Below are positions 4,151 to 62,038 of a DNA stretch of 64,000 nucleotides, piece after piece. Under the pieces are notes generated by a model. It saw only the letters and a list, made by a program, of their open reading frames with translations. It searched no databases and had not been told where the DNA came from. The DNA is taken from the sequence record OP953026.1. One strand, written 5' to 3'. How positions within the stretch are numbered: position 1 is the first letter of the stretch; every line of letters starts with the position of its first letter. The position numbers and the translations under genes are program-made.

Positions 4151-4170
4151 GCTCTCCCCGAAGGGAGAGC
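4151..4170 (-). terminator. hairpin after helicase gene
   Basis: GCTCTCCC-CGAA-GGGAGAGC (UUCG loop on the minus strand), 9 nt after TAA. Confidence 0.75.
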
Positions 4171-4179
4171 TTTATGTTG

Positions 4180-5727
4180 TTAATATCCCCAGTCATCTCC
4201 ACCAGTGGCTTGCATATTGCTAAGACTTGGTACAAAGTCCATGTAATTGTTTTCTTCTTTATCGATATCCCATCTAATACCACCAATACGGTCTGGATCA
4301 AACGGCATAACAAAATAGTGATGCTTACTATCACTTACAACGTTACGGTGTTTACCACGTTGTACGGTTAGATAATACTTACCACTTACTTTAACAATGT
4401 GGAAGAAGAATTCCAGATCAGGTTCTTGTCCAAGTCGGCGACAACCGTCATAGTAACCTTTGTTAGCAACTTGTTTAACAAAGTCTTCTGGTGGGATATT
4501 ATCCCTGATTAGTTCTAATGCCTGAGAACTTAACTGATGCGGACTAAAGAATGTGATACCACGTGGTGCAGTATAGTTACGCATTCGCCTAAATAGGAGA
4601 CGAACGTCATCACCTGCTACACTGGTCACTAATCCAGTTTTAGGCAACATGTTTAGATAATCTACGCAGAGATATTGTAGTTCATAACCACGTGCTTGAT
4701 ATGTATCTAGGTAGTTAACTAAACCAGCAATCGTAAATTCAGTTGGGTCAAAACGATACATTACTGGTTCAAAACCATTTTCACGGAGACGAGCTGATAC
4801 ATATTCAGCTGCTTCAGCTTTACTAATAGAACTACGATCTACCTTGATACCTGTTTCATTTTCGTAAATATACTCATAAATGAAAATAAGGTTATCCGGA
4901 ATCTCATTCTCAAGAGTAATAAACATTACTAATGGTTTCTTATTGATATCACGCATGTATGGTTTATTAAATAGACACACATGGCAAAATAGACTCATAG
5001 AAACGCCAGATTTATATTGATGTTGTAGGCCACCACCGATAATAAATTCACCACGTTTTAATGCACCCAGATCACCAAGCATCCTGTTAAAACCTTTCCA
5101 TCCAGTACGGAAAGCACCATTTGGGGAAAGAATAGTTTTAGCTTCCTCAAAGAAGCCTTCAATAGAATCTAAATTACCAAAATCAAGTGCACCCATTTCA
5201 GCTGGGTGTTTCTCTTCAGCACGCGCGCGAATATATGGGTCAGCTCTGGTTGCCATTTCATTAATGATTGCCGGAATATCAGCAGAGCCTCTATTGAAAA
5301 GAATTTTTGATGAACATTCTTTTACAATAGCTTTTACCTTCTCATCAGCTAAGTAGCTATTTAGATCACGACGATATGAAGTTACACGCATGGCTAATGC
5401 CATGCCATTTGGAAATTCTTCTTCTACTGCATTTTTAACAGCATCGTATAGATAACTTTCTTCACGACAACATACTTGTAGTGATTGTAATACCTGTTGG
5501 GTAGCTGGGAAATATGCTTTCTGTTTCTTATTTAGATCCACTAGTAGATTACGAAGATCTAAAAATGTTTGTCGACCATGATCTACATCTAATGTACCAC
5601 CCTTATCATTTAGAGTATCAAGAATCTCAGTAACCAATTCATTGGATGGTTCCACTGGAGAATCTTCTCGATTTTCTAAACATAATAGAGTGATACATGA
5701 AACGAGTAATTGTTTTGGACTTGACAT
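4180..5727 (-). CDS. dnaB: DnaB-like replicative helicase (phiKZ gp118)
   Basis: SF4 motifs: TGWKGFNRMLG..LKRGEFIIGG..YKS, FITLEN, LCVDYLNML, FFSPHQLS, VQRGKHR. Confidence 0.9.
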   Translation of the reverse strand: MSSPKQLLVSCITLLCLENREDSPVEPSNELVTEILDTLNDKGGTLDVDHGRQTFLDLRNLLVDLNKKQKAYFPATQQVLQSLQVCCREESYLYDAVKNAVEEEFPNGMALAMRVTSYRRDLNSYLADEKVKAIVKECSSKILFNRGSADIPAIINEMATRADPYIRARAEEKHPAEMGALDFGNLDSIEGFFEEAKTILSPNGAFRTGWKGFNRMLGDLGALKRGEFIIGGGLQHQYKSGVSMSLFCHVCLFNKPYMRDINKKPLVMFITLENEIPDNLIFIYEYIYENETGIKVDRSSISKAEAAEYVSARLRENGFEPVMYRFDPTEFTIAGLVNYLDTYQARGYELQYLCVDYLNMLPKTGLVTSVAGDDVRLLFRRMRNYTAPRGITFFSPHQLSSQALELIRDNIPPEDFVKQVANKGYYDGCRRLGQEPDLEFFFHIVKVSGKYYLTVQRGKHRNVVSDSKHHYFVMPFDPDRIGGIRWDIDKEENNYMDFVPSLSNMQATGGDDWGY

Positions 5728-6472: not shown

Positions 6473-8716
6473 ATGAGCGTACATGCCCTAAGAGAACTGT
6501 TTAAACACAAAGGCGAAAAGAATTACGAAGTCTTCTCAATGGAAGATTTCATTGGCCGCCTAGAAAGTGAAATTGGTCTAAATGACAGCGTTGTTAGTCA
6601 AGGTCGTTCCCTTATTAGCAGCATTTCACATGAAAACTTCGGTACCGTGCAAGCTACCGACATTCAAGATGCCGCTGCAATTTATAACAAAATGCAAATG
6701 CTCGTTAACGACTATGGTTTCGAACGAGTAAGTTCCAGTGATCCTCAAGTACGTGCTCGTGAAGAACGTGTCCGTGAGAACCAAATCACTGCTGCTACCA
6801 TGGCTGCTATCGCCTGTGCTGATGAAACTAAATATATCCGTGCACTACGTGGTATTACCAAAGCTAAAGCTTCTAATGAAGATCATGTTAAGGTTGTACA
6901 GCATCAGTTCAATGGCCCTGCTGGTGGCATTCAAGTATTCGAAAATGGTGTTGGCCTAGAGAACTATAACGAGAAGTCACAGCGTGATTTCCGTGTTGTA
7001 ACTATTGGTTATAACCTAGCTGCTAGCCGTCAGGATGAATTCGCTGAGCGTATCTATCCGACCACCGTTATCAACCCGATTGAAGGTGGTGTTGTTCAGG
7101 TTCTTCCTTACATCGCTGTAATGAAAGACGTTTACCACGAAGTATCCGGCGTTAAGATGGATAACGAAGAAGTGAACATGGTAGAAGCCTATCGTGATCC
7201 TTCCATCCTCGACGACGAAAGCATTGCACTAATTCCTGCCCTAGATCCGGCTGGTTCCAATGCTGACTTCTTCGTAGACCCGGCTCTTGTTCCTCCGTAC
7301 ACCATCAAGAACGAGCAGAACCTAACTATCACTACTGCTCCGCTAAAAGCGAACGTACGTCTTGATCTAATGGGTAACTCCAATGCTAACCTACTCATTC
7401 AGCGTGGCATGCTTGAAGTTTCTGACACCATTGATCCGGCTGGTCGTCTAAAGAACCTATTCGTTCTACTCGGCGGTAAAGTTGTTAAGTTCAAGGTTGA
7501 CCGTCTACCTCGCGCTGTGTTCCAGCCCGATCTAGTTGGTGATACCCGGAACGCAGTTATCCGTTTCGATAGCGATGACCTTGTTGTTAGTGGCGATACC
7601 ACTTTCATCGACGGTTCAGCTGATGGCGTTATTAACGACCTTAAGACTGCTAAACTAAGCCTACGTCTAAGCGTTGGTTTTGGTGGTACTATCAGCCTAT
7701 CCAAAGGCGATTCTAAGTTTGGTGCTACCGACACTTACGTCGATAAAGTTCTAAACGAAGATGGCCAGGTAATGGATAATGCTGACCCGGCTGTTAAAGC
7801 TATTCTAGATCAGCTAACTGACCTAGCTGTTATCGGTTTCGAACTAGATACTCGCTTCACCAACACTAACCGTCGTCAGCGTGGTCACCTACTACAGACC
7901 CGTGCACTACAGTTCCGTCATCCGATCCCGATGCACGCTCCTGTAACTCTACCGATGGACACCATGACCGATGAAGGTCCGGGTGAGGTTGTTAAAGCTC
8001 TAACTGTTAACACCAACATCCGTAACAGCAACAACGCTGTTAAGCGCATGCTTAACTACCTTGCTCAACTACGTGAAGTTGTACACAATGGTTACAACCG
8101 TCCGAAGTTTGGTATCATCGAAGGTGCACTATCCGCTGTAATGCGTCCGACCTATCGTTACAAAGAACTAGATCTTGAGAAAGTCATCGACACCATCAAG
8201 TCTAAAGATCGTTGGGACGACGTTTGCGCTGCGATCCTAAACTGTGTTAAAGCTGAGCTATTCCCGGCTCACCGTGATTCCAACATTGAAGCTGCCTTCC
8301 GTGTTATCTCCGGTAACCAGGATGAAACTCCGATGTATCTCTTCTGCTCCGACAAAGAGATTGCTAACTATCTAATGACTAAAGGTGACGACCGTACTCT
8401 AGGTGCTTATCTCAAGTACGATATCGTTTCCACCAACAACCAGCTATTTGATGGTAAGCTAGTTGTAATTCCGACCCGCGCAGTACAACAAGAAAACGAC
8501 ATCCTCTCCTGGGGCCAGTTCTTCTACGTATCTACTGTTATCGCTGACCTACCGATCACTCGTGGTGGTCACCAGGTTACTCGCGAAATCGCGGCCATTC
8601 CGTTCAACCTACACGTCAACAACATTCCGTTCGCGCTAGAGTTCAAGATCACTGGCTTCCAGAAAGTCATGGGCGAAACTCAGTTCAACGGTAAGCTTGC
8701 TGATCTTAAGCCGTGA
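6473..8716 (+). CDS. gp120: major capsid protein (phiKZ gp120)
   Basis: 747 aa; GLE at residues 161-163 fits the known prohead-protease cleavage; highly-expressed codon usage; TGA stop. Confidence 0.95.
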   Translation: MSVHALRELFKHKGEKNYEVFSMEDFIGRLESEIGLNDSVVSQGRSLISSISHENFGTVQATDIQDAAAIYNKMQMLVNDYGFERVSSSDPQVRAREERVRENQITAATMAAIACADETKYIRALRGITKAKASNEDHVKVVQHQFNGPAGGIQVFENGVGLENYNEKSQRDFRVVTIGYNLAASRQDEFAERIYPTTVINPIEGGVVQVLPYIAVMKDVYHEVSGVKMDNEEVNMVEAYRDPSILDDESIALIPALDPAGSNADFFVDPALVPPYTIKNEQNLTITTAPLKANVRLDLMGNSNANLLIQRGMLEVSDTIDPAGRLKNLFVLLGGKVVKFKVDRLPRAVFQPDLVGDTRNAVIRFDSDDLVVSGDTTFIDGSADGVINDLKTAKLSLRLSVGFGGTISLSKGDSKFGATDTYVDKVLNEDGQVMDNADPAVKAILDQLTDLAVIGFELDTRFTNTNRRQRGHLLQTRALQFRHPIPMHAPVTLPMDTMTDEGPGEVVKALTVNTNIRNSNNAVKRMLNYLAQLREVVHNGYNRPKFGIIEGALSAVMRPTYRYKELDLEKVIDTIKSKDRWDDVCAAILNCVKAELFPAHRDSNIEAAFRVISGNQDETPMYLFCSDKEIANYLMTKGDDRTLGAYLKYDIVSTNNQLFDGKLVVIPTRAVQQENDILSWGQFFYVSTVIADLPITRGGHQVTREIAAIPFNLHVNNIPFALEFKITGFQKVMGETQFNGKLADLKP

Positions 8717-8797
8717 GCTGGAAAGGGTTACCGTTATCTAGAAAATGGGACTATCCGTTATTTGGAAGACGGTAATGCCCGGAAGTTAGAAGAGTAA
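8717..8797 (+). other. in-frame 26-codon extension after the capsid TGA (candidate readthrough product)
   Basis: GCT GGA AAG GGT TAC CGT TAT CTA GAA ... GAA GAG TAA = AGKGYRYLENGTIRYLEDGNARKLEE; no start codon before the motif; terminator 9 nt after the TAA. Confidence 0.75.
8732..8761 (+). repeat. 30-nt exact repeat, copy 1 (copy 2 at 34385-34414)
   Basis: CGTTATCTAGAAAATGGGACTATCCGTTAT. Confidence 0.95.
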
Positions 8798-8806
8798 CAG
8801 ACATAG

Positions 8807-8826
8807 GCCCTCCCTTCGGGGAGGGC
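8807..8826 (+). terminator. capsid operon terminator hairpin
   Basis: GCCCTCCC-TTCG-GGGAGGGC flanked by CATA and TATG. Confidence 0.85.
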
Positions 8827-8835
8827 TTTATGTTG

Positions 8836-8871
8836 TATTACATTAAAAAAAGTTTAAGATCTATATTACAG
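8836..8871 (+). promoter_or_regulatory. early (vRNAP) promoter
   Basis: A7-GTTTAAGATC-TATATTAC; phiKZ early consensus TATATTAC; 35/36 nt identical to 60544-60579. Confidence 0.85.
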
Positions 8872-8912
8872 TAATGATCATGATCTTCTAATTTAAAAAT
8901 AGGTTAATTCAA

Positions 8913-9365
8913 ATGAACGTTCAATTATTTCCAGAAGTCATCGAAAGATGGCAAGATGCCCTAAGGGTATCTCTTATAGAAAAAAATACCATGGTAGATA
9001 ATAAGATGTCTACCGTAGATGATGATAAATACATTAATACTTTCTTTGAAGAATTCCATCCTGTTCAGGATGCCTTTATGCCCAAAGGGCTAGAGGACTT
9101 TATTACTGATTATGCCAAGAAAAACATTGAGGAGATCCTTCAAGAAAAACAGTTTAAGCGGGCCACCGAAAAGTTATATTGTTCGAGTGACCCGCATAAA
9201 TGGCAGAAATCAAGTAATAAGGAAAAGAGTGAATCCTTTAAGGGAAGGTCCGTACATCAAACTAAAAAGAGGCTCCCCAACATTGTAGATTTGGAGGCCG
9301 TTGTGATTAAGGTAGATTTCAATGGTAACACTAAAAATTGCGGGGCTTACTCAAGTATCAGTTAA
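8913..9365 (+). CDS. hypothetical early protein (gp121-like position)
   Basis: 150 aa downstream of the early promoter; AGGT SD. Confidence 0.8.
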   Translation: MNVQLFPEVIERWQDALRVSLIEKNTMVDNKMSTVDDDKYINTFFEEFHPVQDAFMPKGLEDFITDYAKKNIEEILQEKQFKRATEKLYCSSDPHKWQKSSNKEKSESFKGRSVHQTKKRLPNIVDLEAVVIKVDFNGNTKNCGAYSSIS

Positions 9366-15024: not shown

Positions 15025-15468
15025 TTAACTACTTTCAAATTCAAGAGTTACTGGTATTGTTGGTATCCACGACAAGTTATTAAAGTATGGATGTATCGTA
15101 ACCGTATTCCCAGTAATAGGTTGCGGTTGTATCTCATCTATAATAAATGGAATACCGTAAACATCTCTTAATTTTTCAGCTACTTCTAAATTATCAGTAT
15201 AGTCAGTTGGTTTACCCGGTACCTTTATGCCAAGACAGTACTCTGGTAAAGAGCGTCTATTAAAGTAAATAACTGCCTCACCTTTAAAATAAAGTGAACT
15301 GGTCTTCGCTCTCATTGTTGTTTTGGCATTTGTACCAGTTGCTAAGAATGTATCGGTTCCTATGAATTCAACATCATCAACAGTTAAATCCCTAGGCCTA
15401 CCATTATTATCTTTAGGTTTATTAGCCACATTCCAAGCAGCTACCAATTCAGCTCTTGTATCAGCCAT
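15025..15468 (-). CDS. virion structural protein (gp126-like), member of the gp126/127/143/158 paralogue family
   Basis: GAGGTG SD; shared two-lobe motif pattern; synteny. Confidence 0.8.
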   Translation of the reverse strand: MADTRAELVAAWNVANKPKDNNGRPRDLTVDDVEFIGTDTFLATGTNAKTTMRAKTSSLYFKGEAVIYFNRRSLPEYCLGIKVPGKPTDYTDNLEVAEKLRDVYGIPFIIDEIQPQPITGNTVTIHPYFNNLSWIPTIPVTLEFESS

Positions 15469-15476
15469 TACACACC

Positions 15477-16352
<876 letters not shown>

Positions 16353-16359
16353 TCGCTCC

Positions 16360-18540
<2,181 letters not shown>

Positions 18541-33892: not shown

Positions 33893-34426
33893 ATGCAGGA
33901 TATCTTTCCGTATGACATGGCATCGAGGGACGCGCTAGTAAAACTTGCGCGGGATGATTTAAAAATAAACTTCAAACCAGAAACAGTTACATTTGAAGAT
34001 ATGTTTTTTAGTCCAACCACGATTGAGCCTGGACGTACATTTATTGAAATGATCGACATTACTACTGACATTAAGTACATGTTAACTTACCGTCGGTTAG
34101 ATTTTGCTGATCCACGAGCTATTGGTGAAGGATCTATCCTTAAGATAGTTGGTACTTTAACACCTAAAGCAATTGCTGAAGAAATCAACCGTTCACGGGG
34201 TTGGAAGCTTGGACCAGATGATGTTTCATTTGATACAACACCAATCAATGCAACTACGGATGTTGTTCCATACACGATAGTAGCTATGTCGAGTAGTTAT
34301 GCTTACTATGGTGAATGTAATATACTAATTCAACGTATTGATGATACATCGGATACTATCCGGCTATTAGAGAATGGCGCAGCACGTTATCTAGAAAATG
34401 GGACTATCCGTTATCTAGAAAGTTAA
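33893..34426 (+). CDS. virion structural protein (gp143-like) ending in a 3x RxLE[N]G tag
   Basis: GAGG SD; gp126/127-type body; C-terminus RLLENGAARYLENGTIRYLES. Confidence 0.88.
   Translation: MQDIFPYDMASRDALVKLARDDLKINFKPETVTFEDMFFSPTTIEPGRTFIEMIDITTDIKYMLTYRRLDFADPRAIGEGSILKIVGTLTPKAIAEEINRSRGWKLGPDDVSFDTTPINATTDVVPYTIVAMSSSYAYYGECNILIQRIDDTSDTIRLLENGAARYLENGTIRYLES
34385..34414 (+). repeat. 30-nt exact repeat, copy 2 (copy 1 at 8732-8761)
   Basis: CGTTATCTAGAAAATGGGACTATCCGTTAT, same peptide frame (RYLENGTIRY). Confidence 0.95.
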
Positions 34427-35475: not shown

Positions 35476-37845
35476 ATGGCAAATGCTACAGACAAAGGCA
35501 AGATCAGTCAACTGCCGGATCTAGCTACTCTTAACGATAGCGAGTATATTGAATTAATTCATACCGATGCAGCTGGTCAAGTCGATAACTATAAGTTTCT
35601 GCTGTCAAAACTACAGACTGGGGCACCCGGTCTTAGTGCGTACGAGATTGCCGTTAAAAATGGTTTCCAGGGAACTGAAACCGAATGGCTTGATTCGCTT
35701 AAAGGTAAATCTTCTTATCAAATCGCAGTCGATCTAGGCTTCGTTGGTACTGAAGAAGAGTTTATAGCATCCCTTAAAGGTGATGCTGGTAAGAGTGCAT
35801 ATGAAGTAGCTGTGGAAAATGGTTTCCAAGGTACTGAACAGGAATGGTTAACATCACTGCATGCAACCATGACTGCTGAACTACTCCAGACACTCTTAAA
35901 TCAACAAGGCTATACAGTTAAAGATGTACTGCGTGTAACTGGTAAGAATGGTGGATTATCATCCAACGCTGCTTTCCATAACTTTGCTTTCCTGTTTGAT
36001 AAGCGTCTAAATCAAGACGACTTAACTGCTGGTGATAAAGTACCTCAGCGTATGATGGAACAAGGTCGTATGGAGGCAGAAGGTTATTCTTATCTAAAGA
36101 ACGCCTCTGCACCCACTACGCAAGGTGCATTACCCGAATTACCTGAGTCTGAAATTCGTATTTATGACAATGGTGAATTCCAGATTGGTAGTTTAACTGA
36201 TTACATTGCATTCAAGAATGACGGCAATATCCGTATTGTTGAAGGCGTTGATGAAACAATTGTTGATCTTAAGAACCTTCCTAAAAACGAAGGTATTAGT
36301 GGCGGTGTATTCGTCAAAGATGTACAAGCAACTGATCCCAGTCAGAACGTAGGTAGTATTGTGCGTACCCCTGATGGACACAGCGTACAGTCATGCCTAT
36401 CGACTACTAGTAATGTTCGGGTTATCGTTGATGCAATAACTGGACATTCTAGTTATGTACCTAGTGTTAAAATCAATAACGTAGATGCAGTTGTAACTCC
36501 TGGCGTTAATCCACCTATGTGGATTGCTACCGCCGATATTGATCTTGGTGCACCTACTACTGAAGGTTATGCTGATATTGTTGTAGAACACGCCGATGGG
36601 GCTAAATTCACTACTAAGGTATTAGCCGATACTCCCGCTAATATTACCAGTGCTGTATTTACTGGCGGTTATCCGTTAGGTCAAACAGAACTTAAAGAAG
36701 ATGACCTTGTTGCAATTAAAGTTGTTACTGATGAAAATATAGTAGCATACGAAATTGCTGACTTTGGTGCACTGAAAGAAAGTAGTGGTACTGTTGCACC
36801 TACTAAAGAACTAGAGGTTACTGGTCTTTACGTAGCTGATCGTGGTAATACTACTAAGGCATATGGTTTCCGTGTACGTGTTCAGAAATCAACTGGATCA
36901 TGGTCAGAATGGTTTACTTCCAGTGATGCTGGTTCCGAAGATAAAATTAACACTATGCAGTTAAACGATCTTCGCCCAGTTGTTAATATTGGTCAAGTAA
37001 CTTATCCGTCTGGTCAAAGTGCTATTAAAGTAGGTGAAACTGCTACTGTAGCCAATACGGTATCTAATGCTGATAGTGTGGTTTATTCCTCACCAAATGA
37101 TCAGCTTACTATAACCAGTGCAAATGAAGCAGAAATTGCTAAGGTAGTTACTTATAAGTCAGGTACTTATAACGACAGCACTAATAACCTATTAATTACT
37201 GCTAAACGTGCAGCTAATGGTAGTGTAGCTACAGCTACTGCTGTTGTGGCTATTGCAAATGCGGCACCTACTGCGATGGTTACCTACCCTGCTGCTCGCC
37301 TTCGTTCAGGTGGTAACTTTGGAACCCAAGTACAAAGTCATGTCATTACTTTAACCTCTACTCAGAAACTAAGTGCAGCTCCGGCCATGAATGCGCCTGG
37401 CGGTAAGTGGGCTACTGAGGATTGGAAATCTGATGCCACTGGTAAGGTATGGACACGTGCATTACTAGTACATGATGATGATCCTAAAGGAACCTACGAT
37501 TTTAACAGTGTGGTTCTAAAAGGTTTAGCTGGTGTTGAAGCTAATAGTGTAAATGGTGGTACTTATGTACTAGGTGGATTTGTATTCCGCACTCTAAGTG
37601 TGGCTGCTTGGCCGAACCGTGAAACTGATATTGGTACTGAAGTAACCAATACTGGTAAACTACGTTGCAGTAACCTATCTAAAGGTTCTACTGGTAGCTT
37701 AAACTTCACTTATAAGGCGGATGATGCAAATCAAGTTGACACCTACACCATCAAGGATGGCAATAAGTGGTATAACTGTGACTCAGCAAACGCTGTGTCC
37801 AACACCACTGGACTGATGAAAATCGAACTTGAGGAAGTAGTATAA
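35476..37845 (+). CDS. virion fibre-associated protein (gp145-like)
   Basis: N-terminal KISQLPDLATL module; 3x SAYxxAVxxGFxGTExEWLxSL repeats; beta-rich Ig-like C-half. Confidence 0.85.
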   Translation: MANATDKGKISQLPDLATLNDSEYIELIHTDAAGQVDNYKFLLSKLQTGAPGLSAYEIAVKNGFQGTETEWLDSLKGKSSYQIAVDLGFVGTEEEFIASLKGDAGKSAYEVAVENGFQGTEQEWLTSLHATMTAELLQTLLNQQGYTVKDVLRVTGKNGGLSSNAAFHNFAFLFDKRLNQDDLTAGDKVPQRMMEQGRMEAEGYSYLKNASAPTTQGALPELPESEIRIYDNGEFQIGSLTDYIAFKNDGNIRIVEGVDETIVDLKNLPKNEGISGGVFVKDVQATDPSQNVGSIVRTPDGHSVQSCLSTTSNVRVIVDAITGHSSYVPSVKINNVDAVVTPGVNPPMWIATADIDLGAPTTEGYADIVVEHADGAKFTTKVLADTPANITSAVFTGGYPLGQTELKEDDLVAIKVVTDENIVAYEIADFGALKESSGTVAPTKELEVTGLYVADRGNTTKAYGFRVRVQKSTGSWSEWFTSSDAGSEDKINTMQLNDLRPVVNIGQVTYPSGQSAIKVGETATVANTVSNADSVVYSSPNDQLTITSANEAEIAKVVTYKSGTYNDSTNNLLITAKRAANGSVATATAVVAIANAAPTAMVTYPAARLRSGGNFGTQVQSHVITLTSTQKLSAAPAMNAPGGKWATEDWKSDATGKVWTRALLVHDDDPKGTYDFNSVVLKGLAGVEANSVNGGTYVLGGFVFRTLSVAAWPNRETDIGTEVTNTGKLRCSNLSKGSTGSLNFTYKADDANQVDTYTIKDGNKWYNCDSANAVSNTTGLMKIELEEVV

Positions 37846-40800
37846 TGGCTTCTGCATTTGAAGATTATGTAAACGGGGAACTCCCCAAACGGGTATCATC
37901 AATTGATGAGCCCACTTCTGTAGTTAATGGACACATCCCGGTTTCTACCGGGGTGGGTCTTAATACTACTTTCGTTGATCCTGTTACTATACCTGGATTA
38001 AAGGGTGAAGATGGTCAGCCGGGTAAAGATGGCGAACAAGGCCCTCCTGGCCCAGTTGGTCCGGCTATTAACATTATCGCTAATGTTGATCTAGCAACAT
38101 TCGAACAAGATATTAAACCATTAGATACGCATAATGTCGGTGATGCTTGGTTCGTTGAAGATCGGCTATGGGTGTGGGAATCACCGCTAGGTAATGAAGA
38201 CCCCCCTGTAAAAGGTCGTTGGGTTGAAACAGGTTCACTTCGTGGTCCAGATGGTACTGGTCTAGTTATCCGTGGTCGTTGGCCTAATAACTTAGAATTA
38301 CCTAAGACTGAAAGTAATAAACCTGGAGATGCTTATTCATGGAATAATCAACTCTGGGCGTGGATGCTTATCTCAGGTAATAATCCGCCAGAGAATCCAA
38401 CTATTGATGACTATGATTGGTTCCCAGTTACACCACAGGGTGAACGTGGACCTGAGGGCCCTGAAGGTCCGCAAGGTAAAGATGGTGAAATTGGTCCTGA
38501 AGGTCCTCAGGGTGAACCAGCAATGCCGTTTACCATTAAGGATTCACTACCATCACCAGCTGATTTACCTGATCCATCTGTAGCTAAAGAATCAGAAGCA
38601 TACTTAGTTACTATGGAAGCTGGTAAACCAGAACATCTATTCATCTTTGTAAAAGGGGCATGGTCAGACCTAGGTACTTTCCAAGGCCCTGAGGGCCCAC
38701 AAGGTAAACCAGGTAATACAGGTGATCCGGGTCCCGATGGTAAACAAGGTGAACCTGGTCCACAAGGTCGTAACTTAGAAGTAGTTAAAGCAGTTGAAAC
38801 TGCTGATGATCTATTAACCACCACTGGTGTAGAACAATACCAAGGTGTTTCAGTACGTTCCACCAATACGGTTTATGTACTGACTGGCCAAGATCCGACT
38901 GTTGATATCTCATGGACAGCCATGGGTTCATTCCGTGGCCCGCAGGGCCCTGAAGGTCCGCAAGGTGAAGATGGCGAACAAGGTCTACCTGGTGAACCAG
39001 GGGCACAAGGTAAATCGGCTTTCCAAGTAGCATTGGACAATGGCTTCACTGGTACTGAGGGTGAATGGTTAATCAGTCTACATGGTAAGAACGTAGTTAT
39101 TACTGGTGCTGTTGCCAATGAGGCAGCCCTGCCGGCAGATGCTCCTGATCAGGCAGCGTACTTCACACAAGACACATCTACCTTATTTGTTAAGATAGAT
39201 GGTAATTGGGTAAATAGTGGTACACATCGAGGTCCTAAAGGTGAAGATGGCGCACCTGGTAAAGACGGTGATCAGGGACCAGAAGGACCCGAGGGACCAG
39301 AAGGCCCACAAGGTCCCGCTGGTGAACCTATCCAGATCATCGCAGCGATTGACACTCCTGAAGATACCCCACCAGAAGCACTTGCCGATAACCAATGGAA
39401 AGCATATACTGTTAAGTCCACGGGCGAAGTATTTGTTAACATGGACGGTAGTCGCTGGACTAGCATTGGTATTATGGCAGGTCCGCAAGGTAAACCGGGT
39501 GAAGGTTTAAACATTAAAGGTGTTTTAACCGATGCTTCACAACTACCAAAGAAAGACACTGATCCTGACTTAGTAACTGGTGATTCATACTGGGTTGAAA
39601 CTAACGAAGGTACAATGCTCTATACTTACCAAGGTCAGGAAATTGATGGCTATATCGGCCCAATTAATCTAAATGGTGAGCAGGGTATCCAGGGTGTCGA
39701 AGGCCCACAAGGTCCTGAAGGTAAACAAGGTGGTGGTCTATTAATTATCTATGTTGGTGATGATGCTGGTAAACCAGTAGCATCTGCTGATAACGTAGGT
39801 AAAGGTATTGCCATTCGCACCAATACTGAAGGACAAGTAGAAGTATTTGTAAGTATCGATACTGAAGGTACATTTACTTGGGAAAGCCTAGGTGTCTTAG
39901 CCATGGGTCCGCAGGGTCCTGAAGGTCCTGAGGGCAAACAAGGTGTTCCAGGTATCCCTGGTAAAACCGGTCAGAAAGGTGAACGTGGATCCTCTTGGGT
40001 AATTCTACCTGAAGGTCAAACTGCACCCACTTCTATCGATGGTAATCGTGGTGACTGGTGTATCGACAAAACTGGTACCGTTTGGTATAAAGATGCTAAC
40101 TGGGTTGTATTCTACAAATTAATGTCAGTTCCAGTTAGTGAAGTCGATCCAGAAGATGTCGATAAGAAAATGGTTCGGTACAAACTCGGTTGGACTGAAC
40201 TACCTGTTGATGAGGTGGTAGATGCTGAAGTAGGTGTCTTCTATGGTCGCCGTAAAGCAACCGCTGACGGGGCTGTTGAATGGACTGCTATTGAATTACC
40301 AACACCTGCCATTGATGCTGTACCTAGTCCAGTTGTTAATGCACAATACGTTCGTAAAGGTATTGCAGGGGGTGAAACTGAATGGGCTACCATTACATTC
40401 CCAGAAATTCCTTCAGATGTAGTACGCGATACTGCACAAGCTACTAAGCCTCAAGGTCGTGTAGCTGGTAACTGGGTTGATGTAGCACCTCTGCAAACCG
40501 ATGATACTCTAATGGGTATGCAAAATGGTGAATGGGTAGCTGTACCAGCCGCAGTTATTGGTGAAGTACCTAGTGAAGGTGCTAATGGCACTAACTATGT
40601 ACGTGAGAAAACAGCTAGTGGTTCTAAATGGACACCTGTAACTATTATAGTTGATCAAGCTGATGCTACTAGTGGACAACTATTCCTACGTAATGCTGCG
40701 GCTAAATCATGGACTCTATTCCAAGGTCCGAATAATGATGTAACCGCTGATGGTGATTGGCTACGTAGCCGTACTGGTACTAATATTACTTGGAAGAAGC

Positions 40801-41137: not shown

Positions 41138-41157
41138 GCCCTCCCTTCGGGGAGGGC
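41138..41157 (+). terminator. hairpin GCCCTCCC-TTCG-GGGAGGGC
   Basis: Identical to the 8807-8826 hairpin; T-rich tail. Confidence 0.85.
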
Positions 41158-41225
41158 TTTATTTTGTATTTTAAGATTGATTCATTATTAACCATACCAT
41201 CGTACCAGTTATATCTAAAAAAAGC

Positions 41226-56039: not shown

Positions 56040-56060
56040 GCCCTCCCATAGTGGGAGGGC
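56040..56060. terminator. bidirectional hairpin between convergent genes
   Basis: GCCCTCCCA-TAG-TGGGAGGGC flanked by CATA and TATG. Confidence 0.8.
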
Positions 56061-56070
56061 ATTATGTTCT

Positions 56071-57243
<1,173 letters not shown>

Positions 57244-60004: not shown

Positions 60005-60030
60005 CGTATATTCCTCTAAGTTTTCACAAC

Positions 60031-60061
60031 TACACTAAAAAATAATTAAGATATATATTAC
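60031..60061 (+). promoter_or_regulatory. early (vRNAP) promoter
   Basis: TACACTAAAAAATAATTAAGATATATATTAC. Confidence 0.8.
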
Positions 60062-60095
60062 TACTATGCATACAATATCTTAAGAGGTTAATGAC

Positions 60096-60501: not shown

Positions 60502-60523
60502 ACCCTCTCCTTCGGGAGGGGGT
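60502..60523 (+). terminator. hairpin ACCCTCTCC-TTCG-GGAGGGGGT
   Basis: UUCG stem after the stop. Confidence 0.75.
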
Positions 60524-60543
60524 TTATATCGCATTAATTTTTT

Positions 60544-60579
60544 TATTACACTAAAAAAAGTTTAAGATCTATATTACAG
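60544..60579 (+). promoter_or_regulatory. early (vRNAP) promoter
   Basis: TATTACACTAAAAAAAGTTTAAGATCTATATTACAG. Confidence 0.85.
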
Positions 60580-60633
60580 ACATGTATCTATATTGGATAC
60601 TTATTAAAACTTAATGATTAGGAAAAATAGAAA

Positions 60634-62002: not shown

Positions 62003-62023
62003 GCCCTCCCATTACGGGAGGGC
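62003..62023. terminator. bidirectional hairpin between convergent genes
   Basis: GCCCTCCC-ATTAC-GGGAGGGC flanked by CATA and TATG. Confidence 0.8.
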
Positions 62024-62038
62024 TATATGTCGTTAATA

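Follow-up and report, generated by a model that had tools for sequence, protein, structure and literature searches.

Recoding at the end of a coat protein gene is known from other phages. In ssRNA phages of the Qbeta type the coat gene ends in a leaky UGA codon, readthrough of which gives rise to A1, a minor extended protein that makes up a few per cent of the capsid. In T7 a -1 frameshift at the end of the capsid gene produces the 10B protein, whose extra stretch is surface exposed and dispensable; we know of no partner-mimicking peptide in 10B. The outside of HK97-fold shells can also be occupied by decoration proteins that recognise the assembled lattice, for example Hoc and Soc of T4 and gpD of lambda. 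A different family of accessory proteins, DUF7941, is encoded by phiKZ and Goslar, model nucleus-forming jumbo phages whose virions have recently been solved at near-atomic detail. The virion of Goslar contains ~2,140 copies of the DUF7941 protein gp23, purified gp22 forms filaments, and AlphaFold models predict a head-to-tail assembly in which the disordered tail or linker of one subunit adds a strand to the N-domain beta-sheet of the next; the filament anchors were put at six baseplate sites, from which a filament length of nearly 3 micrometres was computed (PMC13742148). The phiKZ members of the family are gp126, gp127 and gp143 (PMC13742148), and gp127 has been assigned to the periphery of the baseplate (PMC13250141).

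Our analysis concerns a window of 64 kb from sequence record OP953026.1, which derives from a phiKZ-type Pseudomonas jumbo phage: the last 417 nt of its major capsid protein gene gp120 and the downstream spacer are 100% identical to phiKZ, whilst across the gp143 region the identity is 100% with, for example, strains Churi and NK1 and 97-99% with other strains of the phiKZ type. The capsid gene ends with TGA and is followed by an open in-frame stretch whose translation resembles the C-terminus of gp143 (Table 1). As with A1 of Qbeta, a leaky coat-gene UGA would yield a minor, C-terminally extended coat protein, but the setting here is a dsDNA phage of 280 kb whose capsid protein has the HK97 fold, the readthrough is a prediction from sequence, and the extension (15-48 residues in the lineages that carry one) copies the tail of a virion protein from the same genome and forms no independent domain. 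The likeness to T7 10A/10B lies in a dsDNA phage making a minor extended capsid protein by end-of-gene recoding; a frameshift-type extension was not found, however, since the gp120 extension is in the zero frame, directly 3' of the stop codon. As with Hoc, Soc and gpD, accessory proteins would be held outside an HK97-fold shell, although here the shell itself would offer the docking strand, and on rare read-through subunits only. There is also a relationship to the DUF7941 filaments, as gp143 shares their N-domain fold and its tail corresponds to the “disordered linker” for which docking is predicted; the published anchors are at the six baseplate sites only (PMC13742148), whereas a capsid anchor is proposed here, and the threefold R-x-L-E-[DN]-G form is specific to the Pseudomonas clade when compared with other DUF7941 tails. 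The kind of mechanism is already known from Qbeta A1 and T7 10B, and what is new is the setting, the partner-mimicking tail and its co-variation. Full-text literature searches and the key structural and genetic papers gave no earlier description of readthrough in the capsid gene, and the text of PMC13742148 does not mention the capsid gene stop, readthrough or an extension.

Table 1. Positions of the features discussed, numbered along the 64-kb window
Feature	Position	Strand	Basis or remark
Major capsid protein gene gp120, 747 codons, ending in TGA	6473-8716	+	Pfam PhiKZ_MCP, E 5e-228
Proposed leaky UGA stop, preceded by a Pro codon and followed by G	8714-8716	+	TGA in 23/23 distinct extension-bearing relatives
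In-frame extension: 26 open codons (8717-8794) and own stop TAA (8795-8797)	8717-8797	+	ORF reading; relatives
Three 8-residue units of R-x-L-E-[DN]-G type	8732-8755, 8756-8779, 8780-8794	+	Post-stop frame
Predicted RNA hairpin, ~20 bp, starting 10 nt after the UGA	8727-8776	+	-29.6 kcal/mol, z -5.1
Terminator-like hairpin just 3' of the extension stop	8805-8828	+	Same layout in relatives
Copy A of the 30-nt exact identity	8732-8761	+	Direct comparison; repeat search
Copy B of the 30-nt exact identity	34385-34414	+	Holds the 4-nt conversion patch relative to reference phiKZ
gp143, 177 aa: DUF7941-type N-domain (residues 1-150) and C-terminal tail	33893-34426	+	AF2, Foldseek, Pfam
Three-unit R-x-L-E tag at the C-terminus of gp143 (residues 157-177)	34361-34423	+	37 orthologues
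gp126, short untagged paralogue in the DUF7941 family; candidate docking partner	15025-15468	-	PF25613, E 5e-9
gp127, full-length untagged paralogue in the DUF7941 family; candidate docking partner	15477-16349	-	PF25613, E 1e-27

The tag units of the capsid gene lie in frame behind the TGA and are not preceded by a start codon, so that readthrough of the stop is the only route by which this stretch could be made, as the original prediction had proposed. The terminator-like hairpin that follows the extension's own stop places the extension within the capsid mRNA. To extend these observations we gathered the 3' ends of capsid genes from GenBank phages and IMG/VR contigs. All 23 distinct phiKZ-clade sequences that possess the stretch (capsid identity 52-100%) end the capsid gene with TGA, and in each the extension is in frame, comprises 25-31 codons with three units and terminates shortly before the terminator. 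TGA accounts for only ~14% of phiKZ gene stops (TAA 21, TAG 4, TGA 4), and its invariable use at the end of the capsid gene thus exceeds background usage. The extension's own stop is not restricted in this way (TAA 15, TGA 4, TAG 4; n = 23). The base after the TGA is A in 16 sequences, G in 6, C in 1 and T in none, and the residue before it is A in 10, P in 9, G in 3 and V in 1. The 23 extensions together contain no in-frame stop, whereas 33 and 27 stops occur in the two alternative frames. The Arg, Glu and Gly columns of the first unit are each conserved in 23/23 sequences, and those of the second in 22/23, 22/23 and 23/23 respectively, yet the codons used in these columns include five for Arg (of both the CGN and AGR types), two for Glu and four for Gly, the full set in the last two cases. 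The pN/pS of the extension taken as a whole is 0.62, a value that is uninformative because constraint is confined to a few motif columns and synonymous sites are saturated; codon counts per column were therefore used in its place.

Beyond this clade the same association between stop codon and extension is observed. Taking all lineages together, TGA ends 27/27 capsid genes with an extension (the 23 above plus Goslar, RP31, PCH45 and Moabite) and TAA ends 12/12 capsid genes without one, with no exception, although the lineages in this tally are not phylogenetically independent. The 12 comprise two members of the phiKZ clade and ten further lineages (LucasX, Ea35-70, DT01, EarlPhillipIV, pVa-21, OBP, SPFM17, KpLz-2_45, RSL2 and phiEaH2). 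A weak UGA at the end of the coat gene, followed by an open in-frame reading frame under amino acid constraint, is what would be expected of programmed readthrough. The extension is missing from two clade members and from many chimalliviruses and is thus accessory. The two clade members, IMG/VR contigs L027 (233 kb) and L030 (284 kb), have the only phiKZ-clade capsid genes found without the stretch, and their TAA stops suggest that the stop becomes tighter where the tail is lost. None of the annotated GenBank records examined annotates the conserved in-frame extension, so that it is missed in every one of these records as a source for genome and proteomic databases of this phage family. The records of HPP-Temi (L002, 1274-1417) and Viktualia (L007, 1501-1599) list small “hypothetical proteins” that overlap the capsid gene terminus and are read in another frame.

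The second tag site is the end of gp143, which is followed by the gene for the endolysin gp144. Direct comparison of the two copies confirmed what had first been noted about them. gp143 does end with three R-x-L-E units, although the tag had been placed one base early, at 34360, the first Arg codon being at 34361. The two genes share exactly 30 nt, with the identity bounded by 8731/34384 on one side and 8762/34415 on the other, and directly 3' of it TTGGAA in the capsid copy faces CTAGAA in gp143, a synonymous difference that leaves Leu-Glu in both. A repeat search of the window scored the pair as a 36-nt family of 94% identity, and by our own arithmetic the chance expectation of an exact 30-nt repeat in 64 kb is ~1e-9. 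The absence of the tag from gp126 and gp127 was confirmed on both window ORFs. A scan for the motif that included post-stop frames had also been suggested: in all six frames of the window, at least two R-x-L-E units at 8-residue spacing occur at these two sites only, and in each complete genome of the phiKZ type tblastn with the tag hits two sites and no others.

The three-unit end is retained in 37/37 gp143 orthologues (34-98% identity), amongst which R157, E160, R165, E168 and R173 are invariant. The AF2 monomer model of gp143 has a mean pLDDT of 87 and a confident N-domain, whereas the tail is modelled at pLDDT 66-75 with isolated beta bridges every 8 residues. With this model Foldseek returned a sole significant match, the N-domain of phiKZ gp127 in the solved structure of the baseplate periphery (9xqd chain 0, E 2.5e-6, TM 0.59/0.68), and a profile search with gp143 also recovered PHIKZ127, although weakly. 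The window gp143 itself scores 18.3 bits against PF25613 (DUF7941), under the 27-bit cut-off, but the family is matched by 31/37 orthologues at E <= 0.01 (best 4e-12). gp143 is thus a short member of the DUF7941 filament family with the fold of a solved family member, and the view of the original prediction that the tag was appended to an unrelated scaffold has to be abandoned. Since gp143 belongs to DUF7941 and the published model joins tail to N-domain, the binding partner shared by both tags is, by analogy, likely to be the DUF7941 N-domain itself.

A variation on this arrangement, with a different peptide, is observed in more distant chimalliviruses. In Goslar, PCH45, RP31 and Moabite the capsid gene likewise ends with TGA and is followed by an open in-frame stretch that runs to a terminator (28, 48, 15 and 16 codons respectively), but all four extensions contain an x-G-F motif and none contains R-x-L-E units. 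Amongst all ORFs of the 36-64 kb loci, the capsid extension finds its best match in the C-terminal tail of the short DUF7941-type protein in phiKZ (E 2.6e-9), Goslar (E 2.7e-4, 36-kb locus) and RP31 (E 1e-3). In Goslar this protein is gp23, the positional counterpart of gp143, which also adjoins an endolysin-type gene, and 9 of 13 aligned residues are identical between extension and tail; in RP31 the extension matches residues 168-181 of the 184 in ORF066, and direct tail alignment pairs the Moabite extension with its own short DUF7941 protein, gp136. When extensions were scored against tails in a matrix, the own-genome pair was highest in 4/5 lineages. The exception is PCH45, whose extension matches its own tail only weakly and obtains a better score with the tail of Goslar. 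The extensions of Goslar relatives differ by 3 and 1 synonymous changes with no amino acid change. Goslar gp23 aligns to the DUF7941 Pfam profile through residue 175 of 180, which places the x-G-F tails within the linker part of the family. The gp143-family HMM did not recover the short DUF7941 proteins of RP31, PCH45 and SPFM17, which were located by tail match together with weak Pfam matches.

Judged from these alignments, the extension peptide appears to be kept equivalent to the tail of the short DUF7941 protein of each genome. Two further claims of the original prediction can be assessed at this point. Selection on the peptide is borne out by the frame being open in 23/23 sequences, by the Arg, Glu and Gly columns being kept through varied codons and by the presence of the tag in all gp143 orthologues; that the tag is modular agrees with the finding that in Goslar, RP31 and Moabite the corresponding pair of proteins has a different peptide in common. 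x-G-F tails are carried as well by the SPFM17, PCH45 and Moabite homologues of gp128, a baseplate protein, from which it follows that the tail is a portable C-terminal anchor module. These homologues are encoded at L064 10629-12809, L066 11840-14182 and L071 8544-11114, and several copies are present in Moabite. For phiKZ gp128 (16360-18534, minus strand) the alignment with the homologues stops ~80-110 residues before the C-terminus and no such tail is evident.

We propose that the UGA of gp120 is a programmed leaky stop that a small share of ribosomes would read through, probably via a near-cognate tRNA; tRNA genes were not found in the 64-kb window. Readthrough would add the 26-residue tail to a minority of the ~1,600 capsid subunits. 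This tail would be the same module as the end of gp143, mimicking the tail of a filament subunit at capsomer centres. On the head, the read-through subunits would serve to anchor or nucleate gp143, other DUF7941 proteins or both. We put the probability of this reading as a whole, that a leaky UGA gives rare capsid subunits which anchor DUF7941 proteins, at roughly 0.55. Its parts differ in strength. Translation of the post-stop extension in a minority of subunits is strongly favoured by the comparative evidence; for the predicted docking of the capsid tail on the DUF7941 N-domain the balance tips only slightly in favour. A few capsid subunits per head thus probably display a docking peptide for the DUF7941 family. 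A broader suggestion, that chimallivirus heads are not bare and that read-through subunits, a few per cent of the total, initiate filaments of DUF7941 proteins, gp143 in the case of phiKZ and gp23 in that of Goslar, over the whole capsid, is more tentative, and we would place it somewhat short of even odds.

The C-terminal arm of the capsid protein forms the centre of each hexon, and its contacts in pentons include gp244, an external protein (PMC11297242). On the proposed reading the tail would be exposed outside the capsid and would point outward in hexons as well. The 3.5-A capsid maps of phiKZ and Goslar report nothing at hexon centres, which is expected at low occupancy yet lends no support to the extension. 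Several points count against anchoring on the head: in the published model it is the baseplate to which DUF7941 filaments are attached, and gp143 is missing from the structural atlas of phiKZ, has been reported as a holin-binding regulator of lysis in the cytoplasm and was dispensable in a transposon screen. The screen gives per-gene counts only and is thus silent on insertions in the extension.

If the anchoring reading is correct, the capsid would be linked to the DUF7941 filament family and the puzzling copy number of the latter would have a simple answer. It would represent a natural case in which the number of attachment points on a shell is tuned by the leakiness of a stop codon. Under the broader suggestion of filaments over the whole capsid, ~2,000+ copies per virion could be accommodated without micrometre-long filaments on six baseplate sites, and no programmed readthrough would previously have been described for the capsid gene of any tailed dsDNA phage; the recoded peptide would co-evolve with its partner family. 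A virion component encoded in the most abundant structural gene would then have been invisible both to symmetry-averaged maps and to standard proteome searches.

The most serious alternative is that the extension is translated but that the tag does something other than dock on the DUF7941 N-domain, and all of the evidence for translation applies to it equally. The 8-residue units could, for example, self-associate, forming a small trimeric beta structure that joins the tails of capsid and gp143, as the regularly spaced beta bridges of the AF2 monomer tail might indicate; alternatively the partner of the tag could be a different protein of the virion or phage, or a component of the host surface, or the tag could steer the capsid within the cell. 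The lack of the tag in gp126 and gp127 and the holin-related role reported for gp143 also fit such a function. On the other hand, the x-G-F tails align to the DUF7941 linker, which published predictions place on the next N-domain (PMC13742148), and we consider a different role of the tag unlikely, if still a contender.

It is considerably less probable that the post-stop stretch is untranslated and represents a conserved RNA element at the 3' end of the capsid mRNA, acting in stability, termination or regulation, with the likeness to the gp143 peptide a by-product. The strong hairpin that begins 10 nt past the UGA (z -5.1) would be in keeping with such an element, as would the post-UGA folds of the relatives, whose z-scores range from -0.4 to -2.9; z is below zero in 18/18 sequences tested, and pairing within a sequence exceeded that of permuted arms in all but 3 of 2000 trials. 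The structure itself is poorly conserved, however: the RNAalifold consensus of the extension contains 5 pairs only (-2 kcal/mol), the pairs that recur in the hairpin are those imposed by the Arg and Asp-Gly codons, and a search of positions 8400-9000 against Rfam at E <= 1 returned no family and no SECIS-type match. Nor does an RNA element explain why the frame is open in 23/23 sequences with residues kept through synonymous and CGN/AGR changes, why the division between TGA and TAA is strict, or why the extension matches a protein tail of the same genome where the peptide is a different one. Structure as the main signal was thus found unsupported after RNAalifold, single-sequence folds, a count over register, slide and permutation, and Rfam, although the hairpin could help readthrough. 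It is highly improbable that the UGA is read as selenocysteine under the direction of this hairpin, despite its location ~10 nt downstream, as there is no SECIS-type Rfam match at E up to 1, the hairpin structure is not conserved and the downstream sequences are unrelated in phages of Pseudomonas, Escherichia, Serratia and Ralstonia.

Equally little weight can be given to the suggestion that the two tags resemble each other merely through a recent neutral duplication or gene conversion between the two sites. This does account for the 30-nt identity. At four adjacent bases inside the gp143 copy the window departs from reference phiKZ and strain PA7 (JX233784-type) and has the bases of the capsid copy, and in no other genus is there a long nucleotide identity between the two tags: in eleven genomes from other genera the longest exact match between a genome's own two tags is 5-9 nt. 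From these comparisons the exact identity is a short, strain-level patch of gene conversion. The tag peptide is nevertheless present at both sites in all these genomes without nucleotide identity, so that the R-x-L-E peptide is old and the exact nucleotide identity young. A recent neutral duplication, named at the outset as a finding that would undo the prediction, therefore holds for the 30-nt identity but fails for the peptide, which is kept across genera. As a full explanation neutral duplication is ruled out by conservation of the tag in gp143 orthologues and in capsid relatives.

Other repeated elements were encountered in the window. The hairpin after the capsid gene is one of a family of GC-rich, terminator-like hairpins followed by a string of T-T-T-A-T-G type with no plain T-run (8805-8839, 4151-4183 and 41138-41170, with further members at 56041-56073, 60503-60535 and 62004-62036); the copies at 8807-8839 and 41138-41170 are 97% identical. 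Distant relatives, Goslar and Noxifer amongst them, also have hairpin and string 3' of the capsid gene; the combination may join a terminator to the start signal of the gene that follows. A 44-nt AT-rich element, probably a promoter region, lies downstream of such hairpins at 8833-8876, 60541-60584 (91% identical) and 60025-60068. Together the terminator family and the 44-nt element probably explain the extra places that blastn finds within a record for the 3' end of the capsid gene. Dense direct repeats of a collagen-like Gly-X-Y type (families D1-D3) occupy positions 37992-39972, in the gene downstream of 35476-37845, which corresponds to the tail fiber protein gp146 in the phiKZ annotation.
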